Positions 40-64,000 of a DNA stretch of 64,000 nucleotides are shown here, piece by piece. The notes below the pieces were generated by a model. It did no database searches. It was given only the letters and a program-made list of their open reading frames with translations, and was not told the origin of the DNA. How positions within the stretch are numbered: the stretch's first letter is position 1; every line of letters begins with the position of its first letter. Source of the stretch: Trichoplax adhaerens (taxonomy: Eukaryota > Animalia > Placozoa); contig NW_002060947.1 in assembly GCF_000150275.1 (NCBI RefSeq), positions 6,773,648 through 6,837,647 of the forward strand, in the 5' to 3' direction. The position numbers and the translations under genes were made by a program.

Positions 40-3000
40 GCTATCAAATTGGGCTCGCTCGAAGAAATACAGAATTTACTTACTCTCAACCGTTATGATT
101 GCAATAAAATCAACTCGGTAGATGAAGAAAATTTATTTACTTTTATGCATTTTGCTGCAAGATATGATCGATCCGATGCTGTTGGTTGCTTGATCGATTT
201 TGGCGCAGGTAAATTTTCAGATTTTTTAAGGTATTCTAGTATACTATTGTCTTATCTCCAAATTGATCGCCAAAAAAAAGCTTTTTAAAAATTCATACTT
301 TAATCTAATCCTGTACGATCTGATCAATATCATTTTACAAACATTTTTCGTTATTTAGATGTTAACAGTAAGGGGGGCAAAGATGGTATTACTCCTCTTC
401 ACATTACTGCCCAGTTTAACGGTACGAGTGCAGCTCAAACCTTAATTCAGTTTGGTGCAATTGTTTCTGCTAATTCTAAAACAAAAGAAAACCCTTTGCA
501 TTATTGCTGTAAATACGGAAATGATAAAGTGGCGGAGGTATTACGATATTATAATTACAATTGCTTAACATATGCAATATTAGTTTCTAGCACTTTAATG
601 TAGCTTAGTATGGGGATTGTAGACTAGCTATTAGCAATGTTTAGTACGATATACGGCTGCGTAATTTTCTATATTAACTTGAAGACATATTTAGTACAGT
701 AGCTTATAATCATAAGCTGTAGTGAAACATTCTATGCAAGTAAAGGCGACTATATACGGCAGAGTATCGAGGCAATATTAAAGTTAGAGGTTAAAATAGA
801 ACTGTAATTTATATATTTGGATGTGCTTAATTCATCGTACTCTTGACTAGTAGAAATAATACATCTACTTAAATACAGTAGTAGCTTCCATATTGGATTA
901 ACGATGATCCACTGTAAAGAGTTGTTACTAATAATAATCTTAATATTTGTAGAATACTGTAGAATGTTGCTATGCTGATTGTAGTTCTGAATGCTACGAA
1001 ATCTATAGTATATGGCATTTATTTTGCATATTTTATACCGTACTTAAAATTTACTTTTAAAGTTATTTCTCACTTCTTATCCTATCCTGAACCTTTTAAA
1101 ATTAATTTATTTGGAAATTGTATCTGAACTAGATCATTGTAAGAGAAGCTGAAAGACTTAATATGACTGGAAAGATTGTTAATCAGCCTGATAACGAGTC
1201 TCACTGTCCTATCCATCTCGCAGCTTTATATAATAATAATACGAAGATAATTAATATTTTAGTAAGCTTAAAATATGATTTAGCAAATGATTTGTAGCTG
1301 ACAATACAGTAGGTACAGGTAGTATATCATATGAACGATAATAGCCTTTCATAACCAATATCTCTTTCCATTTGACGTAATTGTCATATTTGTCATGAAG
1401 CTAAAGCATGGAGCAAGTATAGTAAAAAAGAACCTTACTGGTCGATTACCTTCTCATTTTGCGGCAGAACATATGGATACGGCTATTTTAGAGTATCTGC
1501 TTCAACACGGTAAGCTGGATTTATTCATACATACTGTGAGAAAATATACTACTCATTCATTGCTATTGATCGTGTATAATACAATGAACTCTCCGAAATT
1601 TTCATTTATAGCTAAAATTAAAGGTCTCAACGATTATGTAGTAATGTCTAATAGCGACCGAGGTACAGCTCTTCATATTGCCGCCGATGTTGGTTCCGTT
1701 GTCGTAAGTATTTATAGCATACCTTTGCCTGTTGTGGCTTAATGCAATGTAGTTATACAGTTAAATTTAAATAAAGTTTTGTACTATTAAAACGACATGT
1801 ATTTGATCAATTAGGCAGCAGAAATTTGTTTTAAGTACGGTGCGGAGATCGAAGCTCAAACTGTAAATTGAGTTATAATGCAACGTAATTATTTATTTTA
1901 GAAGAACTATTTAAAATTTAAATAATTACCTTATACCACTTCCTTCTGCATAAGATAATATTGATAGCTAATTAATGTATGGAATTCATGAGATAAAAAT
2001 TTCGACTACAGTGATAATGACACCTAAAATTTTGCTTATTGTATCAGTACGAGCTATTAACACCTTTGCACATTGCGGCTAAAAATGGCAACTACGAATT
2101 TGCTGAGTATCTTATAAACAAAGGTGCTAAAGTTAGCTCAAAAGATAACGAAGGAAGAACTTGCTTACACTATGCAGCTTTGTGCAATAATATTTCTTTA
2201 ACTGAACTTATGATTTATCAGGTATATTCATCAATATAATTTCTGCAGCTTATGTTAAATTGTCATACCATCGTAATTCTCGTCAATTTTATCTCAATAT
2301 TCAGGGAGCAGATATTGAAGCTCGCGATACCACAGGCCAGACACCATTACTTTTAGCTATTGGCAGAGGACATACATCAGTTTTTAAAATATTAGTTGAA
2401 TTAGGTGCTGATATTACGGCTACAGACTTCGATGGTCGGCACTGCATCCATTACATAATTGAGCAAAATGATATTAGCACCATACAGGCAGTCTTAGAAG
2501 TAAGCTTACTACGCCTAGCTTGAACACAATTGACATTAGAAATTAATTACAGATATTATTTTCGTAAATAATATTTCAAAACCGTTGTGGTCCTAAATAG
2601 AATGGAGGAAAAGAATTGGTAAATCGCCCTGATAACAAAGGTGTTGTTCCATCGCGCATTGCAGCCATGAAAGGAACCATTGCAGTAAGTTTCATGATAA
2701 TAAATCTCGATTTTCATACCCTTATAACAGTAAATCGGTTTACTCTTACTAGTCAATTATCCTAAATCTCATATGGCATATATTAAATGTAAACCTTTTA
2801 GCTACGCATGATCTAACTATTCGGGTAATAGTCATCACCGCAGCCACAGTCTACACACAGGGCATCGTTGACGTACGTGTGCAATAACTAAATGCTTAAA
2901 TTCGTTTTCTTAAAACCTTGCAGGCATTATATTATCTACATGAAAACGGTGCCTCTTTGAACTCTTTAGATGAAGAAGGAAATACGCTTTTGCACGTAGC

Positions 3001-6000
3001 AGCCAAAGGCAATCATCGCGATACCGTAAAATTAATCTTAGAAGCTACCAAAGCAAAAGATGTCAATACTAAAAATACATTTGGCCAAAAGCCTATCCAT
3101 ATTGCCGCTAAATACGGCCATAATCGTGTTATCCAGAATATGATTAGGAATGGTGCTGATATTAATAGCAGGTAAAAAGTTGATGATTAAAGTGATTAAT
3201 CGATTGATTGATTTTGGCTTATGATTTTGACTGATAACATTTTTAATAGTAGATTTCAGATAACGAAGATTTTTGATAAATTGTTAGAGACAACTATTTC
3301 TACTATCCTCTACACTATGCTGCTGAAGGTGGATTCACAGCAGCGATCCAGCTGTTGGTTGATAAGAATGCTAGAATTTGTGTCTTAGATCGTTCCAAAG
3401 TAAGTAAATTTTTCATGCTCATCAGCGAAATAGGTCAACTTCAGCAGATACTCAATTTAAATCTTTAAGAATCCTAGTTATACATAGAATAAAATCATTC
3501 ATTCATTTTAATTTCCTTCTTCGCTGAAAGAGATATCTTACATTTAATTGCAGAAACACAGAATCTGTATATGCGAATAATAATGCAGATTAAGATCTTT
3601 ATGTTAGTCAATTTTTTTATATGCGTAAGGGAGATAATAATTTAGACAACTTCCCTTACAAGTATGAAATTGATCTAAAATTTTATTTGTCATTACAATA
3701 TATTTTCTAATTCTTCCAACTTTATATTGTTATTCAAAATAATAATTGAAACTCCTAACAAAATTAGTTTTTAATCCGGTAGAATACAGCCCTTCACTTA
3801 GCATCAGCTAATGGACATCAAGAAGTAGTCAAAATATTGTTAGCAAATGGCGCCGACCCAACAGCAATCAACAGCCAGGGTCTAAATTGTTTAGATGTAG
3901 CCATCGAAAACGATCAAACAGAAATTGGACTACAAATTATCCGTAGTGAATAGTAAGAATCTAATTTGAAATATAATTCTTTACGGTTAATCTCCTATGT
4001 TTGACCTTATCATTTCTGGATTTACTGTAGCTGGTATAGCCAGAATATAGTTATCAAAATATTCATCTCAACATCTTATTTATTAATTCCATTTGTAGTT
4101 GGGAAAAAGCTCTAGAAAATAGAGAATTTGATGGACATACGCCAATGAAGAGGCTTATTAAGAAACTTCCTATTGTTGCTAGTGTAAGTATGAATTACGT
4201 TATGTTCATTTAATATACACATGAAAAAAGTAATAGCAAAATAATTTCTAGTAAAGTACATCGACATCCATAAAACATAATACCGACAGCAGCACTTTGG
4301 ATATTTATAGAAATACGGGAGTGCTGTTATATTATAAATTTTTCTGTATGCACTTGCGCTTTGAATATTACGTTGGGATATGTACTAATAATAGCATCAT
4401 TTACAATCTGAAGATATATCTAGTGATGATAAATTTTAGTTCTTAGCTATAAATCACATTGCAAATCTTAGTAACATCTAACCTATTGTAGGCTGTAATG
4501 GACCGATGCATAACGTATACTACTGATATTGGAGATTGCAATGAAGAACAGGTTAGTTAATTGTGTTCTTGGAGCGGCTATCTTCAATGCTAAATGCGTA
4601 TTAATCCAGATATCTAGATAATTAAATTTGCTTAGCTACAGCTAAATGCTATAGAAAATATCCTTGCAAGGTGTAGTGTAGTCTAGTATTTAAATTATTA
4701 TCGCAATAGGCCTGAGTTTAATTAACGTAGATCTAATAAATAATTCAAAATCATTTTGCTAATCTGTCTTCAGGTTATCTTTAACTTTAGTTATTTGGAA
4801 ACTCCGCCATGCCAAATTAGATATAAAAATGTTAAGGATGACTTTTTGGCAGTTTCGGTATGAATATTTAATGAATAGTTATAGGGAACTTACTAGTTAA
4901 AGCAATGAATATTTTTGTGATACATTTACTAGATTAATACTCTTTTTCAGACCATTCTCTCCTATAATAGAATAAAATTAATGAAACACCCACTCATTTG
5001 GGCTTATCGACACTATAAATGGTATTAGCGATGGGCTATAATCTATTGATACGACCCTTTCTAGAATTATATTCGGTACCTCATCGAAATAAGTTTCCTC
5101 TATTGCACTTATGACTGTATGATAATTCATCAATTTAGGAAATCAGTACTGCGATATTTCTATTATGGAGGATGTTTTATCAATCTTGTATTTCTGTTGG
5201 CTATTTGTATACCTATTGGCTTGAATATAAGCGATTATTATGAAGCACTACGTAATAAAACTGGAAATAACGCTGTCCTAACAGTAGCAGTAACGCAAGT
5301 ATATTATTCGGCAGTCTGCTAATCTTCGTCAATAATTTTATTATTTCTTAATGTAATAGATGTGAGTACTAAGATCATCTTTATAATTAAAACTTTATAC
5401 ATTTATAATCTGGTATATGCCTGTGTAATTGGATAAAAACGTTATTCGAATATAATCAGTATTCGGAAGCAATTCATACAAGAAACATCATCACATTTTC
5501 TGCGGTGGTATTTAATGTCTTCATTAATTTAATCAGATTACTCCTCACAGTAAGTATATATGAACAATACCCATCCTAAGCGATAGCATTTCTTTACTAT
5601 TTGACCTTTAAGGATATTTTAATTGCTTGAATTAATACTAAGTATAATACAATTTGCAATAATAATAATAAATGTAAATGACCATTCTACTCATATAACC
5701 TTTATTTAAGCCAAGAAAACTTATAGCAGAATTTGCAGCTTCAGCGCTAGAAATTGGAATCGAATTAATATCCCTAGTTTATTGCATCCCATTTCAAAGA
5801 CCAATAACAAATCTTTTAGTGCAGATTGGAGCACTCATTATGTTTCTTTCCATTATAAACTTTCTAGTATGGCTGAAAAGGTTAGATATAAATTGGAATT
5901 TCGATTTTGTTTAGACAAATTTAATCTTTATCACGGGTTAATTCTTAAGTTTTTTAAGAAACGAAGAATTTCGTGACTTGTGATTATAAAATTTCACTCT

Positions 6001-7305
6001 TAAGGTCATTATTAAGCTTGAATAGTCGTGATCTGCATCATTGCCTTCCATTACTTAATTTATATTGATAATATAGTAGTAAACTATAACCAATCTTTTA
6101 AAAATATGCCGATATTTGTAACAACTAAAAGAAACGTATAACTTTTTTGACAACTCTAATACAGAGCCTTTGGCATCGGAATATATTTAACCATGTTTTT
6201 CACCATCATGAAGACAATTATTAGAGCTTCACTAGTTATTATTCTATTTTTAATAGCCTTCGCTACTGCATGCTATATGGTTTTAAGACAACTTGTAAGT
6301 AGCAGTAAAATTTCAATATTTTACCATAACATCTTTCATTGAAATTTATTTACTTTTACAGCCAGAGTTCAGCGAATTTGGGTATGCATTTATACGCGTT
6401 CTAACCATGATGGTTGGTGATATCAGTTACCGCGAAGTATTCCTGCATTTACATGATACCAATCAATTGCAATACTCTGGTTTAGCTTTGACCATTATCG
6501 TCTTATTTGTTGTAGTTATTAATATTGCCTTTGCTAATTTATTGGTAAATGGACATCTAACTCTCTTTTATCATATCCCATTCCATTTTCTATTCTATTA
6601 TTGAAACAATTTATATTACTGTTGTTAAGGTCGGCTTGGCTGTAGGAGATATAAATGAAGTCAGATCGAATGCCGATATTAGTTTAATTAAAATGGATCT
6701 CTCTTACATAAACAATTTCAAAACATGTTATTGGCCAAAACGCTTACAAAAATATGTATATCAACCAGTCTTCATAATACGAAAACATCAGAAGATGAGC
6801 CTAAGAGAAAAGGTTGGCGATATTAACTGTTGCACACATCTAGTTTACTACTGTGAAACTTATCATATTTTAGATGACACTTTAAGGTATGGCACATTAT
6901 ATTATTTCTCTAGTTTATTTGGGAACAGCTAACTGCAGGTATTACTCTACAAGCTCCAGCAGAGAATACAGAGGAAATTTGTACAAATATAAGTATATTT
7001 CAAGAACTGAGACAGCAACACTTAGAGTAAGTAAAGTCATTGCTTCTGTTACCTCCACAGATACCATGAAAGATGAGCTATACCTTAAATTATTTATCGT
7101 AATACACTAAAATATTTTATAAAATCAGATTGTATATTGAACTGCTACCACAATCGCCTGGTAATTAAAATTTTTTCATTGCGATTATAGAATCAAAGAT
7201 CTCACAGATAAGTTTATTGACTTTCGATCGGATATCTTTTATCATCTAAGTGTAATAAAACGTTTACAAGAAAAAATGAACGCCGAAGATATTTCAAATG
7301 TATGA
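40..7305 (+). CDS. TRPA1: TRPA1-like ankyrin-repeat TRP channel, tandem copy 1 (5'-partial: exons 2-25; exon 1 lies upstream of the window)
   Basis: Exon 2 starts after the AG at 38-39. Ankyrin exons (TFMHFAA, TPLHIAAKNG, TLLHVAAKG, KPIHIAAKYG) are followed by the linker WEKALE..TPMKRLI..AVMDRC..FNFSYLE..HPLIWAYRHYKW, S1-S6, pore LTMMVGDISYRE (~6400-6440) and GLAVGDINEV (~6630). The last exon ends ...EDISNV* (TGA 7303-7305). No stops or frameshifts were seen in the exons checked. Confidence 0.93.
594..1000 (+). mobile_element. Truncated solo LTR, family A (U3 part only), intron 3 of copy 1
   Basis: Aligns to the reverse complement of 52022-52557 from its 5' end up to just before the TATA box. 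Absent from the same intron in copy 2 (~17640). Confidence 0.8.
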
Positions 7306-11130: not shown

Positions 11131-11459
11131 TATTGCAATTTCAGTATCTTTAGATTTATACCGTAAAAGCAATTTCAAATAGTGATTTAGTACAGTAAGA
11201 ATAATAATAAGATATACGTGGATTCAATGGATATAATAATTTTACAATTATACTTTATTCCAAAAGCTTCAACAATTATTAATACAAGAATCACATGAAG
11301 AGGATTCTTTAAAGCCTTTATATTACTTTACGTGATGCACGTACACCTATAAATTTTAAAACTATAGCTAATAAAACTATAGCCGAATTTTATCTGAGTT
11401 TTAGACAATTGGTGGACCGAGTTCGCATTATTTATTTAATGATAGTCGTTATAGCCTGT

Positions 11460-12105
11460 TATACACCTTCCTGAAGTTATCTTTTAAATAGATTTGATCT
11501 AATTATGATGTTAAATGTAAACCATTAATATTTAAATAGATAATATGCAGTAAAATACTTAGTTGCCGAGAATTTATTACTTAAATTATTACAGCCAGTA
11601 CTATACCGTAACTGGTTATAGTTGCCATACCTTATGCCGTATTAATTAATCTGACCCAAGCACAATAAATTTAATTGACTCTTTACTGAAGAATTGGACA
11701 TAGATTAGAAATGGTATGTTAATGTCTGGTAATAAATTGTACGATGCTAATTCCATTATTATATCATAACGCCAGTTACGCCCAGAACAAACTATTACTG
11801 GTAATATCAAGACTAATGTTTTGAAATGTTCGAAAATTAATTACTAGAGTCCAAATTTTATTTCATTTTCTCCTACAGTACATCAGAAATTTTTACAAGT
11901 CTTCATATTGTTGATACTCCTAGTTTAATTAATTCTATTGATATCTGTCCTCTTCAATAATGCAATTTATTTTTGAACTTGAAGTTTTTAGCCATGCTAC
12001 AATTTACTCTTTTATATGAAACAAAGGCAGTAACAAATTCAGGTAGCATCTGCATACGTAACAGCAGGAAGAGGAAATGAGCAAGAATGATACATTTAAA
12101 TGAAG
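11460..12105 (-). pseudogene. Possible GPCR relic, TM5 to helix 8 half, upstream of copy 2 exon 1 (homologs at ~26775-27640 and ~57885-58600)
   Basis: Minus strand: FLFLLLRMQMLPEFVTAFVSYKRV (TM5-like P..Y.R), KTLVLILPVI..FWA* (TM6-like), KDNFRKVY (11484-11461, helix-8-like). Highly degenerate. Confidence 0.3.
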
Positions 12106-13081
12106 TTGATAAACATAGTCTCATTATAATTATAAATGATGTAATGTTATTCTTGAAAGATTTAGAATCTAAATGAATAGCCCTTCATATAGCATAATTC
12201 GTAATTTATAATTCTCAAGCAAATAAACTTTGACAATACAAATAGTATGATAGACAAATATATAAAACTATCAACAGATTAAAAATTAATCCATATATGG
12301 ATTAAAGCTAAAAATTATTGTTTCTACAGAAATTATAAATTATGTTAGCATTGGAAAGTGTATCAAAAATTTCGACATATTAGCTGATGTATAACATACG
12401 TATTTCACATAGCTATTACATACCTTGTAGATCACTTTTATAGACGAGAGCATATAGTAATATCTAAAAGTGGAATTAACGATACACAAATTGATATTTT
12501 ATTCATAAATAAGAGCAACTACTCCGTCAATAGATTACACTTTAATCCACATGCGGATTAGACGAGAAATTAAAATTTCTGCAGATATTATAAAGTAGAG
12601 TAGTATTGGAAAGTATATCTGTAATTTCCGACACCTTCACTGATGTATATTTCACATAGTTACTACATACCATATCGATCGACTATAATTTATATTACAT
12701 AAAAATTTGGCGATCATCGCCATTCTTTTGAAGGTTGCACTTTCGTCGGTCTGGATCACAATAATTATAATTGAATTAATTACTAGACCGTTGAGCGTAT
12801 CTGGAGTGTAGAAAGTAGAAATTGAATTTCAAAGGAAGCATTTATATACGTCCAGCTATGCTAGTATAAGTATAAAAATTATCGTTCTGCTGATTAAAAT
12901 CTGATTAAACACAGAACCGCCTTCTTTTAATTTTGACTAATAAATTAGGAAATCGAAAAAAATAATTATACTTTCAAATTCACGAATGATTTTAATTACC
13001 TGTTAATCGTTTACAAAATTATAGGAATTTTAAAATTAAACTGACACGATTGCTTACGATCTGTTTGACGGAAATACCAAC

Positions 13082-42120: not shown

Positions 42121-43702
42121 TAATGCTCGAAGTGAAATTTTAATAGTTACCATACTGCTGAAAATACTAATCTAATTGATTATCAAGTGTCAGATGATAT
42201 TATAGAAGCGAGAAGATAAAACGTACTGAATAGAATTATACAAAATCACATTGTAAACCCTACAACGCAACACATCTAGTTGGTTAGTTAAGTAAGCATG
42301 AAATAGGGCTCTAATAAGAAAGAAATCCCTTCATTTTATTTTCTTCCAACTTCTAAATCCAAATTTCCCGCTTCTATCGCCAATCTTTCTGAAATCGAGA
42401 AAAAATACAAAAAACGATACCGTCTTGCTCGTCTCATTTTATCATTTACAGATAAGGAGACTACAAATATTATATGCTTGATGAATAGTAATTTCAGCAA
42501 CATCATGTTAGGAATAATTTATATACGATATATCAAACTGTGAATAATGATTTAGTGTCATTATAGTACACTGATGTCGTGAAGCTAAAAAAATTTTTTT
42601 CTGAGGACTAAATTTTGAAGTAACACTACTGGCAGTAGCTGATTCTTTAGAATGCAGTTGGACATTACTTTAAGTAATGTATACAAATCTAAATTCATGT
42701 CGAGGAAAAATAGAACTATTACGGAAACTACACATTGTAAATCTACTTTCCGATTTGCCCTCCCTGACATTTACCTATGCTATGACTCTAAATAGAATAT
42801 CATCTGGAGGAACAATTAAACACTGCCAGTCTCTCGTAGGCATAACTGAGCCCAAGTTTTATGGAAAAGCGAGTCAATTTATAGAAAATCTATATAAAAA
42901 TTAATTATAATTAGCAGCTCATAGATAGCCTTGTACAAGTATACTGTACAGTTTATCTATTAAAATTATGTAAAGAGATATATATAGACAAATTAACATA
43001 AACATATTTCTAGATAAGTTATCTTATGGGATCTATGTGACGACGGCCTTGCAAAAGTTACTCCACAATAATGATATATTCCTAGGTGACCATATTTCAA
43101 CTTTATTGTTTTAGCTAAGTAAAGCTGCAGCCGACCATGTCCCAAAAGCTGATGGTAGACTTAATTAGCATTGTTGAAATTTCATAGCTTCTGTTATAGT
43201 TCGTTACTTCCAGATATTTCATAAGTTGTCTTTTAAATGAAAGCTGCATTTCTTAATTCTATCGATGGCAACATAAAGTATAGTAGCCTTGGAAGATTCA
43301 ATTAGCGATATATATAAATTAATTAATAATTTACTAGCACAATAGCTATAACGCGCTACTTATCGTTGTTACATTATAATCCATTTATGAAATCAATCTG
43401 GAGGTTCTTTGTTTCTATAGATGATGCTATTAAGTAATATTGGAAAGCTTAATTTTCGACATTTTCATTACTACCTTAGCTATAGATTAATAAATAATTG
43501 GTAACTAGAATGAAACCTGATCTAATCAGACACTATTCGATCTATGCCAGTTAAAAAACTAGGAAGCTGAAAAAATATTCCCACTTTCGAAATTCAAGTT
43601 TGCCTAAAATTAAGTTTCAATCAATTATTATTAACTTTATAACACTCTTAGAAACCAAAATTGGTGCAATAGCTCACATTATAGATAAAGAAAAGATTGA
43701 TT

Positions 43703-49700: not shown

Positions 49701-52700
49701 TTTGTACAAGTATGAACTATTAACACCTCTGCACATTGCGGCCAAAAATGGTAACTACGAATTTGCCGAGTTTCTTATCAGCAGAGGTGCTAAAGTTAAT
49801 TCAAAAGACGATGCTGGAAGAACTTGCTTACACTATGCAGCTTTGAGTAATAGTATTTCTATAACGGAACTTATAATTCGAAAGGTACTTTCGTAAATGG
49901 TATTTCTTCAGGTAGTGCTATATTATTGTACGATCGTTATTAATTCTCATCCATTTTATCTCAATACCCAGGGAGCAGATATCGAAGATCGTGACACTGG
50001 AGGCCATACACCGTTACATTTAGCTGTTAAAAAAGGATGTACACAAGTTATTAAGAAACTATTTGAATTAGGCGCCGATATTACGGCTACAGACTCTGAT
50101 GGTCGGCACTGCGTTCATTACATAGCTGAGCAAACTGATATTAGCACCATACAGGCCGTCTTAGAAGTAAGCTTACTATGCCGATCTTGAATTTATTAAA
50201 CTATAAAATTAATTACGGATATCATTTCCGTTTGTAAAATTCGAAACTATCATGGCCCTAAATAGAATGGAGGAAAAGAATTAGTAGAATGTCCTGATAA
50301 CGAAGGCCTCGTACCATTACGTATGGTAGCTACAGAAGGGAACCTTCCAGTGAGCTTTATAATAATCGATCTCGAAATTAATTTCTTTAATTAAATAACA
50401 AATCGGTTTCTTAATAGTGGTAATTCTATAAAATCTCGATTAGCATCTTTTAAATATGAAGCCTTTAGCTACGTATGAGATAACTGCTAAAGTACCCTTA
50501 GAAGTCATCGTCGTGGCTACAAGCCATGCATGCAAAGTGTCCTATGTGTCTATCTGTTTCTTCTAATGGCATAAATCCATCTTCTTCTCAACTCGCAGGC
50601 ACTGTATTTTCTCGTTCAAAATGGTGCCTCGATGGGCACTTTAGATAAAGAAGGCAACACACTTTTGCATATTGCGGCCAAAGGCAATCATCGCGATACT
50701 ATTAAACAAATCTTAAAGCACACCAATGCAAAAGATATCAACACTAGAAATACATCAGGTCAAAAGCCCATCCATATTGCAGCTATTTACGGCCATAATC
50801 GAGTTATACAGAATATGATTAAGAATGGCGCTGACATTAATAGCAAGTAAGAATATTGAAAATTGAAATTAGAGCAATTAAACGATCATTTTAGCTTATA
50901 ACATTTGACTAATAATAGTTGTGGCAGTAGATTCTAGATAACGAATATTTTTCATAAATTGTTAGAGATATCCATTCTTATTACCCACTACACTATGTTG
51001 CAAAGGATGGATATACGGCAGCAGCCCAGCTGTTAGTGGATGAAAATGCTAAAATCGATGTCTTAGATCGCTCCGATGTAGATAGTCTTGGCTCATCTTT
51101 CTACATGATAAAACAGTTTTATTCGATATTTATTTTAACAAACTTTTGATATTCTAGTTATGCATAGAATTAGATCGTTCATTCATTTAGTCTTCTTCTA
51201 AGTTATAAGAGATATCTTACTTTTTTATTACGAAAATATGTTATACGCATATGAGTACGGTAATGAAAGTAAAGATCCTTTACGTTACTCGAATTGATAA
51301 ACTTTCGTACATAATAATCTAAATGTCGATTATGTACCTGTACCGTAACATATACAACTTCATTTACGAGTATTAAATTAATCTAATATTGCAATAGTCT
51401 CTACTATGTCTATTCTAGTCCTTCTAAGCTTTTACATTCTTAATTAAAATAACTAAAGCTCCTAACACAATTAACTTTTAATCTGGAAGAATACGCCTAT
51501 ACATTTAGCATGTGCTAACGGACATCAAGAAGTAACCAAAATATTGTTAGCAAGTGGAGCTGACCCAACAACGATCAATAATCAGGGCCTAAATTGCTTA
51601 GACTTAGCGATAGAAAACGATCAAACGGAAATTGGACTACAAATTATCCGTAGTAAATAGTAAGATTCTAATTTTGAAATATTATTCTTCAACGAGTAAT
51701 CTTCCTGTTTTGACCTTGCTGTTTTTTTTAATTTACGGTATGCAGCATAGTCAGAATATAGTTATCCCAATATTTATCTCAAGATATTCTTAATTCTACT
51801 TGTAGTTGGGAAAAGGCTCTAGAAAATAAAGAATTTGATGGACACACGCCAATGAGGAGACTTATTGAAAAACTTCCTATTGTCGCTTATGTAAGTATAT
51901 ATTTTACATACATGTGAGGTACATAATAACAAGACAATTTATCGTGTAATATATCGATACCTTTATAAAATACAACACCGGTAACAGTGCATTGGATATT
52001 TATTAAAGTACACTAACAGCTTGTGATATATACCAATCACGAAATTCCAAATTTTAGAAAAATAAGGGCTTTATTGAATCTTATACAAAGATTAACTACA
52101 CACAGCTCTACTCTAGCCGAATACTACTACTAAAGACTTCTAGAACGAACTAACAGAATAATCTAAAGTTGCATGCTTTTATACTTTTCGTAGCATTCGC
52201 AGCTACAATCCGCATGGCAACCTTTTACCTTATTTTACACATAGTTAAATTATTCTTAGTAACACTATTCTACTGCGGACCACCATTAGTCCGATATGGA
52301 TACGACTACAGTATTTACGTAGACATTATTGACACTAGCCAAAGTACAATGAATTAACCATATCCTAATATATGATTTACAGTTCTATTTTTACCTATAG
52401 CCTTATTAGTAACCAAAAACCTTACTGTATATAGTCATCTACTCTCTAACATAGAGTCTATACCACTACAGTCTAATAGTTATGGCTACCAAATATCTAC
52501 CGTACATTATACTAAACATGGCTAACAGCCTACAATCACAACACTAGTTACATTACACAGCTCTATTGTATCATAGATTCTTCTATCAACTTGTACTTTA
52601 AAAAGAAAATCATAGTCTGCGTAACGTCTAGATATGTACTAATTATATATCATAATTTAAAATCTGAAGATATTTTGCGATAATATATATTAGTTGCTAA

Positions 52701-55700
52701 ATATGATAAGCTTTCCTAATCATTATACTGTCTAAACTAACGCAGGCCGTAATGGACCGATGTATAACGTATACAAGTGATATTGGAGATTCCAAAGAAA
52801 AGCAGGTTAGTTAATTGCGTTGTTCAAAGCTGCTATCTTAAATATTACATAATTAAAATTCTAGATGAATAAATTTGGGAATCCAAATATTTTTAATTCG
52901 AAATGTTTCAGATTGTTTTTAACTTTAGCTATCTGGAAGCCCCACCAAGCAAAACTAAAACTAAAAATACTGAGGACAATTATTCGGCGGCATCGGTACG
53001 AGTATTTAATTAATAAGCAATTTTAGAAATGTAATTTGTACGGCAACAAGTAATTTGTAGATGTATTTATCTACAACAGAGATAACATTGATCCTTTATA
53101 CTATTAACATTCTTCATTTACAGAGTATTCTCTCGCATAATAGGATCAAGTTAATGCAACATCCTCTCATTCGGGCTTATCGACATTATAAATGGTATTA
53201 GCGATAGGCTCAAACCTATTGATACTACCCTTTCTACAATTAAATTCGATATCTTATGTAATTAATTTCTCTTTTATTACTGTACATTTATAACAGTACA
53301 TTGTACAATAATTTATTAATTTAGGAATTCGCTATTACGATATCACTACTACGGGCGATGTTTTATCAATCTAGTATTTCTGTTGGCTGTTTGTACACCT
53401 GTTAGCCTAAATATTGACGACTATTATAAAGCTGTCCGTAATCAAACTGGAAATAACGCTGTTGAACAGATAACAGTAACACAGGTATAATATTCGATAG
53501 TTTTAATAATCTTTGATAACATTTATTATTAGCATTTAATAGATAGGATTGATATGGTCACTAATGTTATCTTTACGGTTTCGACTCTTACTCTTATATC
53601 CACAACTTGGCAATGTATGTATCGGTGCAATTTGGATGAATACGTTATTCGACGATTATCAGTATTCGGAAGAAGTTTATACAAGAAATATTGTTGTATT
53701 TTCAGCCGTGGTGTTTAATGTTTTCATTCACGTAACCAGACTAGTCTTCGTGGTTAGTTTACAAATTTGTACCTGATAACATACCTATTGTGCATAACGG
53801 TATTTGATTATACTTGTCCATAAGTTAAAAAAAACTTTACTATTGACATTAACAGATATCTTAATCATTTGATTTAATATTAAGATTAACATAACTTTCG
53901 TTTAAAAATAATGTAAATGACAATTCTATATCGTCTATTTAAGCCAAGCAAGTTTATGAATGAAATTGCAGCTTCTATAGTAGAAATTGGGATCGAATTA
54001 ATGGCTCTATTATATTGCCTTCCATTTCAACAACCAACAACAATTCTAAAAGTACAAATAGGAGCCATGATTGTTTTTCTCTCCTTTATAAACTTTCTAA
54101 GGCAGCTAAAAAGGTAAGCCTCAAATAGGATTTTACTTAAAATTAGGCAATTTCGTTCGTCGCTATCGGTTAATTTATAAATATCGTCTATTAAGAAACG
54201 AGAAAATGAATAGCTTGTAATCGTAAAGTTTGATACTCAACTCAATCATTAAGCATGAAAAGTTATGATCTCCTATCCTTCATTACCTTACATTAAGAAA
54301 AGCTGAGATAGATAAATTAAGATCAATTATCTCACCAACTGTGTAATAGTTGAGTAATAGTCTCCTAGTATTATTGGTAATCCATGTGTCTAATTTTGGA
54401 GTACTCTATTTAATCAGCGTCTAAATAAATAAGATAGTGCAAGTTATAGTTAGCCCATGATGCCTATAAATTGATAGCTTTAATAATCAACTGCATCTAT
54501 TCCGCTGAAATTTATAATTATTAAATTTCTTTAATTCAAGAATGTAATATATTTTAAGCTAATCTGATAAACATTTTAATTATTACAGTATCTATAGTCA
54601 ATCTTAGGACTTTATGATTGTTGCATCACTAATATAGAGCCTTCGGTGTCGGATTATATTTGACCATGTTTCTCACCATCATGAAGACAATTATAAGAGC
54701 TTCACTAGTTATTATTCTATTTTTGATTGCCTTTGCTATCGCTTGCCATATGGTTTTAAGACAATTGGTAAGTAGTAGAAAGTTTTCATGTATTACAAAT
54801 TATATCTTCTATTAATATTAATTCACGCTTACAGCCAGAGTTCAGCGAATTAGGGTACGCCTTTATACGTGTTCTAACGATGATGGTTGGAGATATCAGT
54901 TACCGCGAAATATTTCAGCATTTATACGACACAAATCAACTACAGAACTCTGGTTTAGCTTTGATCATTATTGTCCTCTTTGTTGTAATTATTAACATTG
55001 CTTTTGCTAATTTATTGGTAAGCTGATGTTTAACCATATTATATTACATTTCATCATCAGTCTTTTTAAAATCTGTTGCTGTATTAACTGTACATTACTG
55101 TATTAAGGTTGGCTTGGCTGTAGGAGATATAAATAAAGTCAGATCAAATGCCGATATTAGTTTAATTCAAATGGATCTTTCTTATATAAGCAGTCTCAGA
55201 ACATATTTTATGCCAAAATTTTTGCAAAAGTATGCATATCAATCAGCATTAGTGCTACGAAATCATCACAAAATGAAGCTAAGAGAAAAGGTTCACGATA
55301 TTAACCCTAGCTATTTCACATATCTAGTTTTCTAAAGTGAAAATGGTCAAGATTTAAATGATAGTTACTGTACGATCTATTAAACTATTTTCTAGTTTAT
55401 ATGGAAAAAGTTAACTGAAGGTGTTAGACTACAAGCTCCTATAGAGAATACGCTGGAAAGATGCAAGGATATCAACATATTTCAAGAATTGAGACAACAA
55501 AACTTAAAGTAAGTAAAGAAATTGCTTCTGTTACGCCTATANNNNNNNNNNNNNNNNNNNNNNNNNNNNNNNNNNNNNNNNNNNNNNNNNNATATTTTTA
55601 TAAAGTATCAATATATATTGAACTGTTACAATTACTAATTGGATACTTTTATATTGCGATTACAGTAGCAAGGATTTCACAGATAATTTTGCTGATTTTC

Positions 55701-55780
55701 GATCAGATGTTCTCCATCATTTAATTACGATAGAAAGCTTACTGAAAAAAATAAGTAATGAAGATCCGGCATTAATTTGA
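43703..55780 (+). CDS. TRPA1: TRPA1-like channel, tandem copy 4 (complete, 25 exons; one weak donor, assembly gap in the last intron)
   Basis: ATG at 43703, exon 1 ends 43981, exon 2 starts 47689. Exon structure matches the paralogs. Pore at ~54875-54910. Ends ...EDPALI* (TGA 55778-55780). Confidence 0.9.
45196..45362 (+). repeat. Local tandem duplication, period ~87 bp, intron 1 of copy 4
   Basis: TTGATCAATCTTTTAAT..TCCTTGA...AAAATGAAGA.ATTCGATCT occurs twice. Confidence 0.85.
46387..46775 (+). mobile_element. Degenerate LTR-like element, intron 1 of copy 4
   Basis: TGTGATG...GAGACA; flanks TATTAC/TTTTAC; the 3' part resembles family A. Confidence 0.5.
46848..47163 (+). mobile_element. Solo LTR (316 bp), intron 1 of copy 4
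   Basis: TGTTGTAA...TTGCAACA (7/8 inverted repeat); flanks GATCA/CATCA (4/5); TATAAG ~46947; AATAAA ~47044. Confidence 0.75.
48996..49426 (-). mobile_element. Solo-LTR-like element (431 bp), intron 6 of copy 4
   Basis: TGTGAC...GCGACA; minus-strand TATATAAA (~49177) and AATAAA (~49103); flanked by AAAAGTGC/AAAAGTAC; absent from the paralogs. Confidence 0.8.
52022..52557 (-). mobile_element. Solo LTR (536 bp), family A, intron 14 of copy 4
   Basis: TGTGAT...ATTACA; exact TSD CAGCT at 52017-52021 and 52558-52562; minus-strand TATAAAA and AATAAA. Confidence 0.93.
55542..55591. other. Assembly gap (50 N) in the last intron of copy 4
   Basis: Run of N. The flanks match the paralogous ~165-bp intron, so the true gap is probably of similar size. 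Confidence 0.98.
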
Positions 55781-56498
55781 ACTGCGAGTACTTAAAAGCT
55801 TATTAATCAATTATCCGCTTAAGGATAGGTGGCCGCTTTGCTATTAGTTAATATATTTATGCACTCCTTAAATATTTGTTGATTTTACGTATAAAATTAT
55901 AATTTAAGTAGCAAATCCTCATTTATATAATATAGTTACGTCTCTTAAAGTCGATAATTATCATTGTAAAAAGACTAGTCTTCTGTAATCTAGAAGTTAT
56001 CCAAACGTTAATTTGTTTTTTCGTGAACGGTAATTTCTTGCGTTATGTTCATTATTACTGTATGTGTTATACTTTGAGCTATAGGTTAATTTAATATATA
56101 GTTGTTAACAGTTACACCACTAAGCTCAGTAATAATTACGTTTTTATGGAGATTGTGTACTCAGATCTTAATTAAACGGCGTCAGTGCAGTTTGTTAACT
56201 CGTACACAGTATTAAAGCAGAGTTAAGATTTTATATTCTTAGTAATGTGATATGTTGCCATATTTCATTACATACTTAACACAGATTAGCTTCCGTTACA
56301 GTATAGTATACTTCTACATAAAAATGATTTGCATTTAACAGCTTGTTCTTAAATATCCCATTAGTGCTTAGGCTCGATTTTTGCATATAAATAAACTAGC
56401 TTAATCGGTCTTTTTCGTTGACAAATAATTCTTTTATTGTGCTTTTCAAACATTACATTACTGGTATGTAAGTGACTTATTTATCCTCCATCCAGCTA

Positions 56499-56860
56499 TG
56501 TCATAACCGTCGCTTGTGGCAAAGCTTTGGTAAAGAACTCTAGAGTAAGTACAGTAACTCGGGCTGCTTCTCCAGTATTTTCCAGTCTCTATCCGAGCAA
56601 TATATGAGAAATCAATTTCTCAGCTGTACTCCACAAACAACTGATTTATAATTAAATTTTTCTTCACACTACGACTCCTGAACGCTTCTTAAGCAATTAG
56701 TACTTTAATTTTAAAACCACACACACTTAAATATATTTGTAACGTGAATTCTAACGTTATATACAATTACTAAATAGATACGAGTATGTAGATATTGTGG
56801 AACTTAGAGTGCTGAAACGCTCATTCGTCGTCCTTATATGACTTTTCTCAGATCTAACGA
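56499..56860 (-). mobile_element. Truncated family B LTR, fused to a piece resembling the 20014 LTR's TATA region
   Basis: 56499-56770 aligns to 23884-24170. The reverse complement of ~56800-56840 resembles 20405-20445. Host spacer homology resumes at ~56865. Confidence 0.7.
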
Positions 56861-56939
56861 CAATCAAGACTAACACTTTGGTATACTAATCTGAGTAATT
56901 TTTCACTGTGACAACAAACCCTCAATCTCTAGAAAGATC

Positions 56940-57560
56940 ACATTCACATTCCCATCACTTGCTACTGGCAAATATCATAACATAAAGCCACTAAGTTCTC
57001 AAATTCGCTAGAAACTGATATTAATGTTAAATTAGAGATAAAAAAATTCTACAACTTTATTATTACCGACCTTTCAGGCATAGAATTGTTAATGAAAATG
57101 AAACGTTTTACAGCTCAAAATTAGCTACAGAAGCGTTGACCGATGTAAGCTGTCTTGAATAGGATGTGGTTTATAATGACTGTAAAAAACTACTGAAATT
57201 AATAAAATCCGATAGTAAATACTGTTGATGCTTGAAATGAATTTGATTATTGTATTATCAAAATTACTAATCTAATAAATTAACTCGAGCCAGATGATAC
57301 TATTGAAGCAGGAAGACAAAATGCGCTGAATAGAATCGTTTAAAATCATGACGATAAATTTTACCATGTAGCACATTTAGTTGACTAATACAATGAATTG
57401 CGTACAATGGGGATCTGGTAAGAAGGAAATCTCTTCGTTACCCTACGCCTTTGCTTTTGAATCCAAATTCCCTGCTTCTATCGCTAATCTTTCTGAAATC
57501 AAGAAAAAATATAGAAAATAATACAGTCTAGCTCTTCTTCTAAATCATTTAAGGATAAGA
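56940..57560 (+). pseudogene. Duplicate of the decayed spacer coding relics (copy 4-5 spacer)
   Basis: Aligns by eye to 41360-41580 and 42160-42460: ..GKYHN..ETDINV, DDTIEAGRQNALNRIV*, GSGKKEI...SKFPASIANLSEIKKKYRK*. Confidence 0.45.
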
Positions 57561-59174
57561 CACTTTACCTATTGCCTGTTCAATCAATTTTAAGAAACTC
57601 ATGCTTATGTAAACCATTTAAAATGTGATATACCATGGTATTAACAATGATTTCATAACAGTATATTTCACTGATGTCGCGAAGCTAAAAAAATGCTTCA
57701 TTTGGAGGACTTTAGAATACGGATGCAGCTTGACATTGCTGTAAATGATTTGCTCCTATATAGCTATAATTTTAATTTTAATAATCTTAGCTAAGTAAAG
57801 CTATGGCCGTAGCGTGTTCTAAAGGCAGATGGTAACTCATTTAACATTACTAAAATTTCATAATGGTTGCTAAAATTAATGATACGCATTTCATAAATTA
57901 TTTTTTTAAATGATCTGATCCAAGCTTTGTTATAGTTGATTTTTTAAAATTTTAACCAAGTATTATTTTAAATGATAAACTATTAAATTGCCATCAATTA
58001 AAAATTATGTATAGCGCATTTGTATTCTGAGAATCGTGATGACGCAAAATGAAAATTTCGCTAGATATTCTTAAATGTACCGTAGCCATAGCCATAACTA
58101 TGTACTGTTATTGTATGCCTCAACTAATGAATCTGATCCAAATATAATGAATTTAGCTGATTCTTCAAAATAGAGTTAGATATATGAGAAACGACGCAAT
58201 AACGTCTAGCAATTAATTATACGATAGTTATTAACTATAACTATCTCACTAATCACACCCAAAGTGATCTGATAATATAACCCGTTAAGACTAACGTTTA
58301 TAATATATCAAACAATCATAGATATTATTTTACTGCCATCTTTTCGATAAGAAAGCAGCAATTTTATTCGTTATACATTATACTATGTTACTTGGGATGG
58401 GAAATAAATCAGAGCCTAATGATTTTTCTTTACGTCTGTTTTCATGAATAATAAATTATATTGTTAAGCTTTAATCTTTTCAAGGCACCTACTATTTATT
58501 CTTCTATATAAAGCAAAGGCAGTAACAATTTAGACAGGCATCTACATAAGTAGCGACTAGGAGAGAAGATGAATAAGAATGATAGATTCAAATAAAATTA
58601 ATATGAAAAGTATCTCATCGTGGTTAATAATCTAACATTATTCTATGAAACAATAGCAAGATAACTGAATAGCATTTCATACAATAGAAATTGCAAGTCA
58701 TGATTGCTTACTAGATTAAACATGATATAGTAGTATAATGATAGAAAGACATCAAAATTATGACGCAATGAAATCATGAATGCTGCCTATCTATTATATT
58801 TTAGTTCTAGCCAACTAAATCGTGGCTGTGTTACTTGTTTTTGTCAACGATTGCACACCGAAACTGGACTTGCCTGTTTCTATAGAACATGCTATAAAGT
58901 AGCCTTTAAAGGTTTGCTTGGCTGTAGCGCCATTACCATAACGCATTATTTATAGTTACTACCTTACCGATTGATTATAAAAATAATCTGTAAGCAGATC
59001 AAAATCAGGCTTAATCCCGCTTCCTATCTTATTTATTCTGACAAGTAAATTGGAAAAGTTGAAATAACGCAACTTCAGCCAAAATTCGAGATTGATTTTA
59101 ATTAAATCATTTTAACTGTATGAGTGCCGCATTGTTGTAAATTCTGCTACTTGTATACAGAAGAAGTATAAATC

Positions 59175-62100
59175 ATGAAAAAAACTTCCAAGATCAAGGC
59201 TTTTGATCAAAACGTCGATGACGAGCCGGATCGCCATAATGTTCGATTTATTAATAGGTGGAAATTTCCCAGTTGGGGATCAAAGAAAAACATGAATCGC
59301 TCTTCAACTATCGAACATGGTATTAATACTATGTTTGTTAAAGTTAGCGACCAGCAGAAAAGATCAAAATCTACAACAAGCAATGCCGTTAATAATTCAT
59401 TAGTTAGCCTTGGCTTTGCCGTGGCGAATACTAAGGCAAGGGATCTCTATGAGGTGAGAAATTTGTTTGCTATAACTTATTTATTAACTTTAATCTTACC
59501 AAGAAACATGATTGTAGAATTGATGATAGTAAATTAAAATGGTATGAAATTTATATAATTATACAGTTATGGTTTATAGGGACTTCTTTGTTTTTCAATA
59601 TAACTAATGCAGTCATATTGAAGAGATAAAGAATAACCTACCGCCATAAGCTATCAGTTGTATTTAATTTAAGAATAACGTGTTAAATCTATAACTGACA
59701 CCGAGCAATAATTATACGATGAGCAGCTTAAAAGCATCGCTAAATTCAAAGCTACATTTTACTAGATTCGTTCTGATTCGTCTTTGATATCATAAGCTTT
59801 CCTGATGAGTAATAGAATTCATATTTGAGATATTATAATTGATTAAGTAAAAGCTGAAGAATTTAGCGTGAAAGATTACTGTAACTTACGGATTTAATTC
59901 GAAAACTATCAAAACTTTCTTGCTTTTACTACTTTTTTTAATTTTAATTAAAGTATCTTATTAACTATCTAGCTATAGCTAACAAGAGTGAAAATATATA
60001 TTTAGAAAAATTCTTTTTCATACTTAACTCTAGCCCTAACCCTAGCCATAATATTTAAATAGGAACGATAATCTAATGTAGCACTGGATTTGATCAATTA
60101 AAACTACTAAAAGTAACTCTAATTACTAGAAATATAAATTTATTTATTAATTTAAAATGGGTTAAATAACTATAGTGTAAGCAGAAAAAAGTAAATTTCT
60201 ATTTGGCTACGAATCTAATCTTGCACTTTCCCAGTACGTAAATTTATCTATATCATAATTTTAACTCTTCTGTGGATCATTAATATTTCGTGCAACCATC
60301 TTTAACTTATTATTATATCGATAAATAAAATACGAGTCCTTTGTAAGCGATAGTTGATGTTAATTAACACTATAAATACTTCTTGATAATGATTAGACTG
60401 TCATCTTTAAGATACAGTTATTCAATTTCACGCTATTGATTCAATGAAAGACTACCATTATATAGTTTATGCTTCGATCGCCAAACGCAGTCAAAAATTT
60501 CAAACCTTTCTATCTTTCACTACGTCGTTATATTTGATCCGATTGAAAGGTGATATACAGTATTTAAATTCTGATTAAAGAGTTGAATGCAAGTACCTAG
60601 AGATTAATGAGCAAAGTAAATTTTTCAAGGATTGTAGTATCATTAGTTATCTTCATCAAACTAAACTAAACTCGAATTTATTTAAAATTTAGTAATTCAT
60701 TTTTCAAATACTATCATTATCTAATAACTTTATTTTGACTTTTTAGCTGTAATTTGAACTTAGAAATAAGACAATATTCATATTTCGACATCAATTAAAT
60801 TTTATAGGCTGAAGCACAAAGTTATGACATTTTAATAGCAGAACTGCTGCAACTGACCTATGTCTGGAAATGATGTCAATAAAAATAGACAGGTGGTCTA
60901 GATTAGTGGCGCTAACTAGTTGGCTAATTGTTTCTTTTCGGTCTCAATTATAATACTACAATAGTTATTTTAGAAAGAATGCAATGCAGCTATTACTCGT
61001 ATCATTTTAAAATAGCTGATTTATATTTAAAGTAGTTTAAAATTTGGGTAAAGATCAAGTTTTGCTGCCTGACGAAGTGATAGCAAATGATTGTGGGGGG
61101 GGCATCTTTCCCTAAAGAAATAGGCAAGTACGACATAACTTATGCTGTCTTAATGCTGTCTTTAGGGGTTGTTTAGTTTAAATTGACAATCTATTGAAGA
61201 CATAATGAGAATTGTTTGTGATACTGCTATCAGTAATTAGCTAATAATATAATGAACTTTCCATCCTATGCGTGAGGAAGCTAAATGTAGAGGATTGATC
61301 CTAAGACCGATATTATAAATATTGTTAATGATTCTCTAATTAATTATATTAGATTTATGAATTTGATCAATGTAAGTCTTGAATTTTTCCTTCCCCCAAA
61401 CCGTGCAGTAACATCATGATTTCATTACGAATAAGATTAAAAGTTAATTCATTTTTACTGTCTCCATATTCCTTTACTATATCTATTTATATTGTTGTCC
61501 TAATTCTTTTCGTAAATTTACTTCTAAAATACATAGTTGAAATCTGCCATATCGCTTAATTAATTAAGTGAGATACAGCGGTTAAAGCTTCATTTGTCCC
61601 ATTCGCGTTAAAAATTTAGTAATAGGTAAACCGATAAATAAAATTTATTAACAGGGAGAGAGTCATCACCAAGTGTATATTGTAATTTTGAATGGCTATT
61701 AATCTGGATAGTTAACTTTAAGATAGTTTAGCGAAATCTGCTTATCAGAGTATTCTAGACTACCCGTGCAAGTTAAGGAATAGGAATATTTCACGCTTCA
61801 ATCTTTAATTTTTTTGTCATTAGTTTGTTTATTTAATGATAAAGTCAGTCTGAGTTTTTTGCAAAGAGTTAAAAGCAAAGACATTAACCTTGCAAGGAAC
61901 TAAAATATCTGAGTTATCGATCTAAATTAACATGGTGTTTCAACTGCGTTATAATTAGCTTACTAAAGAGTTTCAAATCATATTTTCAAGCTACATCCAA
62001 TCCACGTTACTACTAAACTTGGTACCAGATCGTTACCATAACGAATTACAAAAGATATTAATTCATCGTACTAATTCATATAAATTTTACATAAATTAAC

Positions 62101-64000
62101 AGGCAATCAAAAAGAGCTCAATAGAAGAAATAGAAAATCTACTTGCTCTCAACTACTACCGTGATAAAATCAACTCAGTTGATAAAGAGAATTCATTTAC
62201 TTTTATGCATTATGCTGCAAGATATAATCGATCCGATGTTATTACTTGCTTGATTGGCTCCGGCGCAGGTAATTTTTCATATTTAATGGTATACATATTT
62301 TATAAATTACAATAGCTACAGATTTATCTCTAAGAGTAAGCTTATTAATATCTTTATCTAACCTTGTATGATTGTCATCCAGTTAATATTGCCTACAATT
62401 GTTTTTTTATTATTTAGATGTTAACAGTAAAAGTGGCAGAGATGGCATTGCTCCTCTCCATGTCGCCGCCCAGCATAATTGTACCAAGGCAGCTCAAACT
62501 CTAATTCAGTTTGGCGCAAAGCTTTGTGGTAATTCTAAAGCGAAAGAAGGTCCTTTGCATTTTTGCTGTAAATACGGAAGTGAGGGAGTCGCCGAGGTAT
62601 TACGATATTGTAATAATAATTATTCTCTTGAACTGCAATAACCAGCATAAATCTGTTCCAGGAATCACTTTTTTATTTTTAGACTACATTTAAAATCGCC
62701 ACTGAAGTAACATATCGCTATTATTGTCCTATTTTGCATATGTTAAAATTGATTTATTTGCATATCGTATATGAACTAGATCATTCTAAGAGAAGCTGAA
62801 AAACTCAATATTACTGGAAAGATAGTTAACCACCCTGATAATGAATCCTACTATCCTATCCATTTTGCTGCTTTATATAATAAGGAGAGGATGATTGATA
62901 TTTTGGTAAGCCTAAAAGTATTTGGTAACAGATTTGTAGTTAATTAGTATAGACAGTATCGCATTAAATTAACAGTCTTTCTTAGCTAAACATATTCAAC
63001 CCGTTTGACGAACTACTCGTCATGTAGCTAAAATATGGCGCAAGTATAGTAAAAAAGAACATTAACGGTCGATTGCCTTCTCATTTTGCGGCTGAACGTA
63101 AAGATACTTCTATTTTAGAGCATCTACTGCAATACGGTAAGTTGAATATATTCATAAATTTGATGAAAATATGCGTTATACGCAATAGTTTATGTACAAC
63201 TGGATTTTGGAACCATTTACTTATAGCCAAAATTAAGGGACAGAACGACTATATAATGATATCTAATAATGAGGGAGGCACAGCTCTTCATGTAGCAGCA
63301 GATGTTGGTTCTATCGCGGTAAGTTTACAAAGCATCTTATTGCATTTGATTTAATTCGAAGATAATGAAAATTTAACCTAAATGGAATATGGAACCGGAA
63401 TCAATATGAAAAATTGCATCTATTCATCTCGTTAGGCAGCAGAAGTTTGTTTGAAATATAACGCGGATATCGAAGCTCAAACAGTAAATCCAATCATAGT
63501 TTTTTGTTTATGGCGATATTGCTGATACGATGTATCGCATATTTTGTACGATAGTATAATATAGTTTGTTGGCGTTTATTGATAAACAAAGTTATCTTTG
63601 TAGTTCTTTCGCTATATATTGAATACTTGCTTATTTTATCTAGTATGAACTATTAACACCTTTTCACATTGCGGCTATGAATGGCAATTACGAATTTGCC
63701 GAGTTTCTCACAAATAGAGGAGCTAAAATCAACTCAAAAGACAATGAAGGAAAAACATGCCTGCACTATGCAGCTTTGAGTAATAATCTTCCTTTAATTG
63801 GGCTCATGATCCAGCAGGTATGTTCGCCGATGCTTGTTAAGAAGGTCTCAATTGCATGACTTTTGCTTCTTGTAGGGTCAATATCGTAAGATCATAATTA
63901 AACTTCATCAATTCATTTCATACAGGGAGCAGATATTGAAGTTCGCGATAACAAAGAACATACACCATTACTTTCAGCTGTTTATAAAGGGTGTTCATCT
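59175..64000 (+). CDS. TRPA1: TRPA1-like channel, tandem copy 5 (3'-partial: exons 1-9)
   Basis: Exon 1 is 59175-59453 (93 codons, WKFPSWGSKK motif) and exon 2 starts at 62103. The ankyrin exons are homologous to copies 1-4. Exon 9 starts at 63926 and is cut by the window edge. Confidence 0.88.

Follow-up and report, generated by a model that had tools for sequence, protein, structure and literature searches.

Are the repeated TRPA1-type genes in one stretch of the Trichoplax adhaerens genome real and maintained copies of an ion channel, and has selection diversified them as sensory receptors? We addressed this question for 64,000 nt of scaffold NW_002060947.1 (v1 assembly, positions 6,773,648 to 6,837,647, forward strand), i.e., the whole stretch that is called the window below; coordinates refer to the window unless the scaffold is named. 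A preliminary description, made from the letters alone, had proposed an array of intact, diversifying TRPA1-type channels, possibly an undescribed sensory system. Our reading, to which we assign a probability of about 85%, is that the five genes A to E are part of a 13-gene TRPA array that grew in tandem, is held under purifying selection, has undergone gene conversion between C and D, is partly expressed and encodes putative sensor channels.

Gene models and transcripts

The window is AT-rich (31% GC) and contains a single run of 50 N at 55542-55591. Its self-comparison yields a direct repeat with a period of 15-17 kb and 70-87% DNA identity, with units that start near 1, 17134, 31774, 47622 and 62043. 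The filter motif TMMVGDISYRE is found on the + strand at 6404, 25391, 38475 and 54877, a fifth copy lies just past the window end, and Pfam ankyrin hits fall on + strand exon translations in the window. We built gene models with an aligner of our own, which maps proteins onto genomic DNA across GT/GC-AG introns of any phase and tolerates frameshifts, with public proteins of Trichoplax sp. H2 (handles P0001, P0013 to P0016) as alignment guides. Each of the genes A-E comprises 25 exons with identical intron phases, all introns are GT-AG, and the spliced alignments contain 0 stops and 0 frameshifts over open reading frames (ORFs) of 1141-1148 residues. The proposed five head-to-tail paralogs with shared exon structure and open frames are thus borne out, with exon 2 at 40, 17173, 31840, 47689 and 62103 and all copies intact. 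Searches, folds and look-ups reported below were run on single exons or on the public H2 counterparts rather than on joined spliced models.

All five genes are read from the + strand. Gene A (1148 residues, TGA stop, 0 indels, counterpart P0015 at 99%) occupies 40-7302 with its exons 2-25, and its exon 1, read from the genome and intact, lies 4483-4190 bases before the window start. Gene B (1147 residues, TGA) spans 13082-26295, with exon 1 at 13082-13366, exon 2 from 17173 and the pore exon at 25349-25531. Gene C (28336-39370, 1143 residues, TGA) has its exon 2 start at 31840 and its pore exon at 38433-38615; its counterpart is RDD41720.1 (P0001). For gene D (43703-55777, 1141 residues, TGA, counterpart P0013), exon 2 starts at 47689 and the pore exon is 54835-55017. 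Gene E (counterpart P0014) contributes exons 1-9 and the start of exon 10 to the window (59175-64000, exon 2 start 62103), and its remaining exons 10-25 run to 69192, i.e., 5.2 kb past the window, where an intact 25-exon model of 1145 residues ends with TAA. Exon 1 encodes about 93 residues and is followed by a long intron (0.6-4.2 kb across the array, 2.6-4.2 kb in A-E), such that the genes span 8-13 kb across the array and 10-13 kb in the case of A-E. The small conserved ORFs at 13040-13459, 28318-28662, 43685-43999 and 59172-59534, which precede each exon 2 by about 3-4 kb, were considered as a separate small gene; each is instead the first exon of the TRPA gene that follows, since the H2 protein includes them and an RNA contig joins 59454 to 62104.

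Two H2 guides, P0013 and P0016 (the latter aligned to gene F, a further member of the array), produced odd micro-exons because an exon or a portion of the pore is missing from these protein models, and we adopted the 25-exon solutions instead. Compared with gene D, P0013 is without exon 19; compared with gene F, P0016 is without part of the pore, S6 and the TRP region. The T. adhaerens DNA supports intact 25-exon models of both genes, and the annotated fragment TRIADDRAFT_56806 confirms the 3' part of the gene F model. Relative to the 25-exon model of gene E, P0014 is longer by 48-50 residues, owing to one additional exon of 76 nt and an extended exon 15.

Intron 24 of gene D (55509-55665) contains the whole assembly gap (55542-55591), so that no exon or frame is broken and a disruption of the gene by the gap is ruled out. 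The neighboring exons 24 (55396-55508) and 25 (55666-55777) are in phase and collinear without indels with P0013 and P0001, and the intron measures 157 bases in gene D versus 154 bases in gene C. A DNA contig from an independent run enters the gap by 33 AT-rich letters, and a second one starts 22 bases after it; none of the contigs listed spans the gap.

Transcript evidence comes from two RNA runs of one study, whose contigs were aligned over window positions 53600-59599. One contig, preceded by the end of exon 20, joins 54636-54766, 54834-55016 and 55107-55143 with GT..AG gaps of 67 and 90 bases, and further contigs splice exon 18 to exon 19. These spliced contigs belong to gene C and not to gene D because the flanking letters match C exactly but D with 1-3 mismatches; that they align on D at all follows from the C/D conversion tract described below. 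For gene C, the contigs thus join exons 18-19 and 20-21-22-23. With regard to gene E, contigs of either run extend over 58937/58939-59454, and their next 27 letters are identical to 62104-62130, which proves the splice of exon 1 to exon 2 across 2.65 kb. At least C and E are hence transcribed and spliced as modelled. No contig of the two RNA runs lies on the D-specific exons 23-25, where such contigs can show presence but not absence, and a search for paralogue-specific transcript fragments with the protein sequence of exon 23 (gene B) returned 0 candidates.

The gene E contigs begin 236 bases before the ATG. A conserved block is located further upstream at 58417-58761 (+ strand), and the self-comparison matches it to 11926-12189 and 27460-27803, i.e., upstream of exon 1 of B and C, respectively. 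It may act as the promoter of gene E, with a putative transcription start at 58937-58939. One RNA contig carries 25 extra letters before 58937, which were considered as a spliced leader or an upstream exon; in reverse complement they match part of exon 2 of C, D and E exactly, and the contig is probably a strand-switch or assembly chimera. In addition, a low-depth (2.2) contig of an RNA library covers 57059-57316 between D and E, which could reflect DNA carry-over or an intergenic transcript. Rfam yielded 0 matches in the window.

Purifying selection and gene conversion

Protein identity among A-E ranges from 69 to 88%, with D vs C at 88% and B vs A at 78%. We computed ratios of nonsynonymous to synonymous substitution rates (dN/dS) pairwise by the Nei-Gojobori method, for whole genes, domains and 40-codon windows, with bootstrap 95% limits. 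Whole-gene values lie between 0.21 and 0.31 with upper limits of at most 0.40, and the highest value of any 40-codon window is 0.57, i.e., none is near 1. Every copy of A-E is therefore shown to be retained under purifying selection. The preliminary description had named a ratio of about 1 throughout as a sign of neutral decay; such decay is excluded by the open ORFs together with limits well under 1.

The domain-wise comparison, which had been proposed as a check, orders the protein from a rigid pore to a loose C-tail. Mean dN/dS is lowest for pore plus S6 (0.08, mean protein identity 90%) and for the S4-S5 linker plus S5 (0.09, 91%), followed by the linker/pre-S1 region (0.17, 76%) and the ankyrin domain (0.22, 77%). 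Higher means are found for S1-S4 (0.30, 69%), the TRP-like region (0.33, 74%), the N-terminus (0.35, 61%) and the C-tail (0.40, 49%). The earlier statement that the pore is essentially invariant while N-terminus, linker, S1-S4 and C-tail vary thus agrees with the pore value of 0.08 and with 0.30-0.40 for the N-terminus, S1-S4 and the C-tail, but does not fit the linker (76%, 0.17). For the pores of A, B and E, dS is 0.35-0.85 and dN 0.04-0.07, such that their conservation is true purifying selection. As no domain or window comes near a dN/dS of 1, the word diversifying can only be used in the sense of relaxed constraint and not of demonstrated positive selection. A fixed pore with a variable periphery is the ordinary pattern in any channel family.

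The identical pores of C and D have a different origin. Self-comparison and exon/intron identities delimit conversion tracts within 35347-38615 of gene C (+ strand; partner 51425-55017 in gene D). Between the two genes, identity reaches 94-100% in exons 13-20 as well as in introns 13 and 15-19, and 97-100% in exon 21, intron 21 and exon 22 (the pore). Identity drops to 70% in intron 20 between these tracts (37468-38235) and to 79% in intron 14, where D has about 560 extra bases. Elsewhere, C and D exons share 76-99% (mostly 76-94%) and introns 62-88% of their positions. Accordingly, C-D dS is 0.00-0.09 within the tract compared to 0.26-0.47 outside. This shows that C and D swapped sequence recently by gene conversion, and since the introns in this part are 94-100% identical as well, their identical pore is attributed to conversion. 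Of the proposed birth-and-death family, the tandem array is shown; however, the conversion between C and D is concerted evolution, and the process is not pure birth-and-death.

The array and its place among TRPA channels

On the 8.57-Mb scaffold NW_002060947.1, 13 pore exons are arranged head-to-tail between 6,683,926 and 6,854,816, which corresponds to an array of about 180 kb. All 13 genes were modelled from the flanks, and 12 of them are intact with 1136-1151 residues. Genes A-E and F form one subfamily (50-88% identical), U3-U7 another, and U1 stands apart; both this grouping and the tree below leave out U2. The filter reads MMVGDISYRE in A-E and MMIGDIGF in F, and U3-U7 have G-E, not G-D, at this place. 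In U3-U7 (scaffold 6674605-6738430), the equivalent of human C641 is Ser, such that this second subfamily differs there as well as in its filter acid. The assignment of the host to the placozoans is confirmed by two short annotated T. adhaerens models, which a library-wide search with the pore exon returned alongside RDD41720.1: TRIADDRAFT_56806 is the C-terminal part of F and TRIADDRAFT_56791 that of U6, both with 100% identity.

Within the array, apparent damage is confined to gene U2 (scaffold 6742363-6753347, 20-31 kb before the window), in whose exon 1 a stop or frameshift falls at codon 6-15. Its exon 11 carries a unique 368-base insertion with GT..AG ends that could act as a new intron, and its exon 18 possibly holds an extra intron of 64 bases. 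A profile built from 12 pore exons matches 39 open pore exons across the genome (E ≤ 0.001), and further groups form several arrays on C1413 and C1399. On the small unplaced contig C1286 (1795-1977), a pore exon scores 103 bits, level with the upstream array genes; it may be an allele of one of them or an additional copy that the assembly left unplaced.

One-to-one H2 counterparts with 99% identity (tree pairs) exist for A, C, D, E, F, U1, U6 and U7, and those of A, C, D, E, F and U1 probably reside on one H2 contig of 370,362 bases. Gene B as well as U3, U4 and U5 have no counterpart among the H2 proteins retrieved, a comparison of proteins and not of H2 DNA. The duplications are shown to be older than the split of T. 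adhaerens and Trichoplax sp. H2. Genes A-E further differ in intron lengths and in independent repeat insertions, and at least half of the D-E stretch is present in 13 sequencing runs (20 runs with matches in all, from 6 studies). A dispersed repeat of 568 bases illustrates such insertions: it occurs at 31103-31670 (+ strand, intron 1 of C), 601-1007 (- strand, intron 3 of A) and 52022-52557 (+ strand, intron 14 of D), and because the three copies sit in different introns, the insertions postdate the duplications. It has sharp ends and at least 40 scored copies with 82-88% identity from 693 genome-wide candidates; no terminal inverted repeats were found on inspection, and it has no Rfam match.

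With regard to channel type, the earlier assignment to TRPA1-type channels stands, i.e., we find the full TRPA1 architecture with human and Drosophila TRPA1 as best matches. Among solved structures, the pore exon alone matches only TRPA1, and PF00520 is recorded for the H2 counterparts. P0001, the counterpart of gene C, aligns to human TRPA1 over residues 55-1020 (957 residues, E = 6e-109) and to Drosophila TRPA1 with E = 4e-96, and it matches NOMPC via ankyrin repeats only. Its AlphaFold2 (AF2) model has a mean per-residue confidence (pLDDT) of 81 and starts with 88 residues that are predicted to be disordered. Then come 17 ankyrin helix pairs (residues 91-657), a helix-turn-helix accompanied by two strands, the helices S1-S6 plus two pore helices, the TRP-like helix (1014-1039) and, after it, a third strand. 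The predicted 51-residue C-terminal helix (1087-1137) has a pLDDT of about 43-69 (mostly 57-69) in this single-chain model and is the most divergent part. Foldseek places 7YKR, a Drosophila TRPA1 with 17 ankyrin repeats, on top (E = 2.6e-38), and human TRPA1 structures give template modelling (TM) scores of 0.63-0.67 over their resolved parts.

Compared with TRPA1 of human and Drosophila (6V9V, 6PQQ, 7YKR), the placozoan proteins are collinear, with 16-17 ankyrin repeats, the helix-turn-helix/beta linker, S1-S6 and two pore helices. Genes A-E share the G-D filter (human G914-D915) and a nearly identical motif NLL(V/I)GLAVGDI at the S6/TRP start, and both sides have a TRP-like helix plus a long C-terminal helix. 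Differences are the low identity of only 25-28%, the extra, predicted-disordered N-terminus of about 90 residues on its own exon, the replaced C621 and C665, a Ca2+ site that is mostly not conserved, and many tandem copies in a separate placozoan clade instead of a single gene. At the position of human K710 we find Arg or Trp, while C641 is kept in A-F and U1. The cysteine pattern of the linker varies by paralogue: in A and B, a Cys follows the C665 position at a distance of three residues (PPC; exons 14-16, window 4099-4857 in A and 21673-22614 in B), A has one more (IGDC), and C, D and E have none there.

A phylogeny (LG+G4, arthropod-specific TRPA sequences left out) had been suggested as a check as well. 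It unites the placozoan genes in a TRPA clade of their own with 100% support, outside the vertebrate plus mollusc TRPA1 clade and also outside a large clade of TRPA1 homologs. We thus file A-E as TRPA channels with TRPA1-type architecture and not as proven TRPA1 orthologues. Multiple paralogues within one lineage are likewise seen in the TRPA1-like expansions of molluscs (abalone, oyster) and cnidarians; those of molluscs are candidate thermo- or chemosensors (PMC12980990). The placozoan case differs from these expansions by the neuron-less animal, the head-to-tail order of 13 genes in 180 kb and the clade of its own.

Rival readings and the role of the array

Under our preferred reading, the array would have grown by repeated tandem duplication through unequal crossing-over, each copy would form a tetrameric, non-selective cation channel that acts as a cellular sensor, and the copies would probably be tuned to different stimuli or expressed in different cell types. 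Several points weigh against it. RNA support is limited to C and E and to contigs of one study, such that A, B and D are backed by sequence constraint only. The dN/dS values stem from a simple pairwise method applied to self-spliced models, and gene conversion distorts those of C and D. In the tree, the placozoan clade forms an unresolved fork with TRPA1 proper and the TRPA1-like group. Human C621 is Thr in A-F and C665 is Thr, Ala or Ser; mammalian-type activation by electrophiles is therefore not expected. Of the four human Ca2+-site residues only E808 is kept throughout, given an uncertain alignment of S2. Finally, channel function, stimulus, localisation, cell type and subunit mixing are matters that we infer for A-E.

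That the row consists of decaying duplicates or of two alleles assembled side by side is highly improbable, even if gene D holds an assembly gap and the C/D tracts are 94-100% identical. The gap is intronic, five ORFs are open over 1141-1148 codons, and the dN/dS limits are far below 1. An allelic or assembly artefact, which the preliminary description had considered, is essentially ruled out by protein differences of 12-31% (i.e., copies 69-88% identical), by differing intron lengths and independent repeat insertions, and by the H2 counterparts (99% for A, C, D and E; those of A, C, D, E, F and U1 probably on one H2 contig), as well as by the independent runs, 13 of which hold at least half of the D-E stretch. 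Nor is expression restricted to a single copy, a further concern raised there, since both C and E are transcribed. Non-sensory or redundant channels, e.g., for epithelial ion handling, in organelles or for dosage, that differ mainly in place and time of expression are an unlikely explanation. It would agree with a purifying selection that is fairly uniform over the copies, with the loss of the canonical electrophile-sensor cysteines and with diverged sequence upstream of exon 1 (about 62-72% identity in intron 1 and flanks). However, the TRPA members studied so far are polymodal sensors (PMC11526382), and a family with dozens of members fits a receptor repertoire better than a set of housekeeping channels.

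Slightly better placed, yet still doubtful, is a sensory birth-and-death repertoire in which diversifying selection acts on the sensing modules and heterotetramers broaden the sensory range. The tandem growth to 13 genes here and to about 39 pore exons genome-wide suits this idea, as do a periphery that is less constrained than the pore, the damaged-looking U2 outside the window and gene B, for which no counterpart was among the H2 proteins retrieved. The C-terminal helix, which builds the tetramer coiled coil in human TRPA1, is also the most divergent part (49% identity). On the other hand, no window has a dN/dS above 0.6 (the maximum being 0.57), so that diversification in the sense of positive selection, as first proposed, is not borne out. 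Conversion makes C and D more alike instead of more different, and turnover is slow given that 8 array genes are one-to-one and 99% identical across two Trichoplax lineages. What remains as our preferred reading is thus the tandem array of constrained, partly converted and partly expressed TRPA genes.

How does this relate to previous accounts? As excerpted in a 2023 paper on Trichoplax thermotaxis, the T. adhaerens TRP list of Peng et al. 2015 and Kadowaki 2015 comprises TRPM1-4, TRPML, TRPP1-2 and TRPV1-2 and no TRPA (PMC10498350). The paper itself adds XP_002112601 as a new hit (PMC10498350), a number that directly precedes XP_002112602, the fragment mapped to gene U6. The absence of TRPA from the TRP surveys likely stems from the 2008 gene models, which cut the genes into fragments. 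Our literature search, whose scope excluded most subscription journals, found no paper describing these TRPA arrays, and to this extent the system is undescribed as had been supposed; this does not hold for the genes as such, since the H2 annotation names them TRPA1 and Najle et al. 2023 list a TrpA1 orthogroup with placozoan members (PMC10580291). With TRPA expansions being known in molluscs and cnidarians as well, the finding is not categorically new. It does provide a counter-example to a 2024 review (PMC11526382), in which large TRP genes were suggested not to duplicate readily in tandem.

In summary, the locus is a real, constrained, partly expressed and lineage-specific tandem expansion of a placozoan TRPA subfamily with a putative sensory role. 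Trichoplax performs thermotaxis and chemotaxis without neurons, and to our knowledge the sensors behind these behaviors are not known. Dozens of intact, constrained and partly expressed TRPA genes are obvious candidate sensors. More speculatively, a placozoan-only radiation of about 40 TRPA genes in several arrays, with the row of 13 genes as the largest, might even be the main environmental sensor repertoire of this neuron-less animal, in which different paralogues, perhaps combined in heteromers, would detect different thermal, chemical or mechanical cues by a mechanism that is independent of the cysteine-based electrophile sensor.

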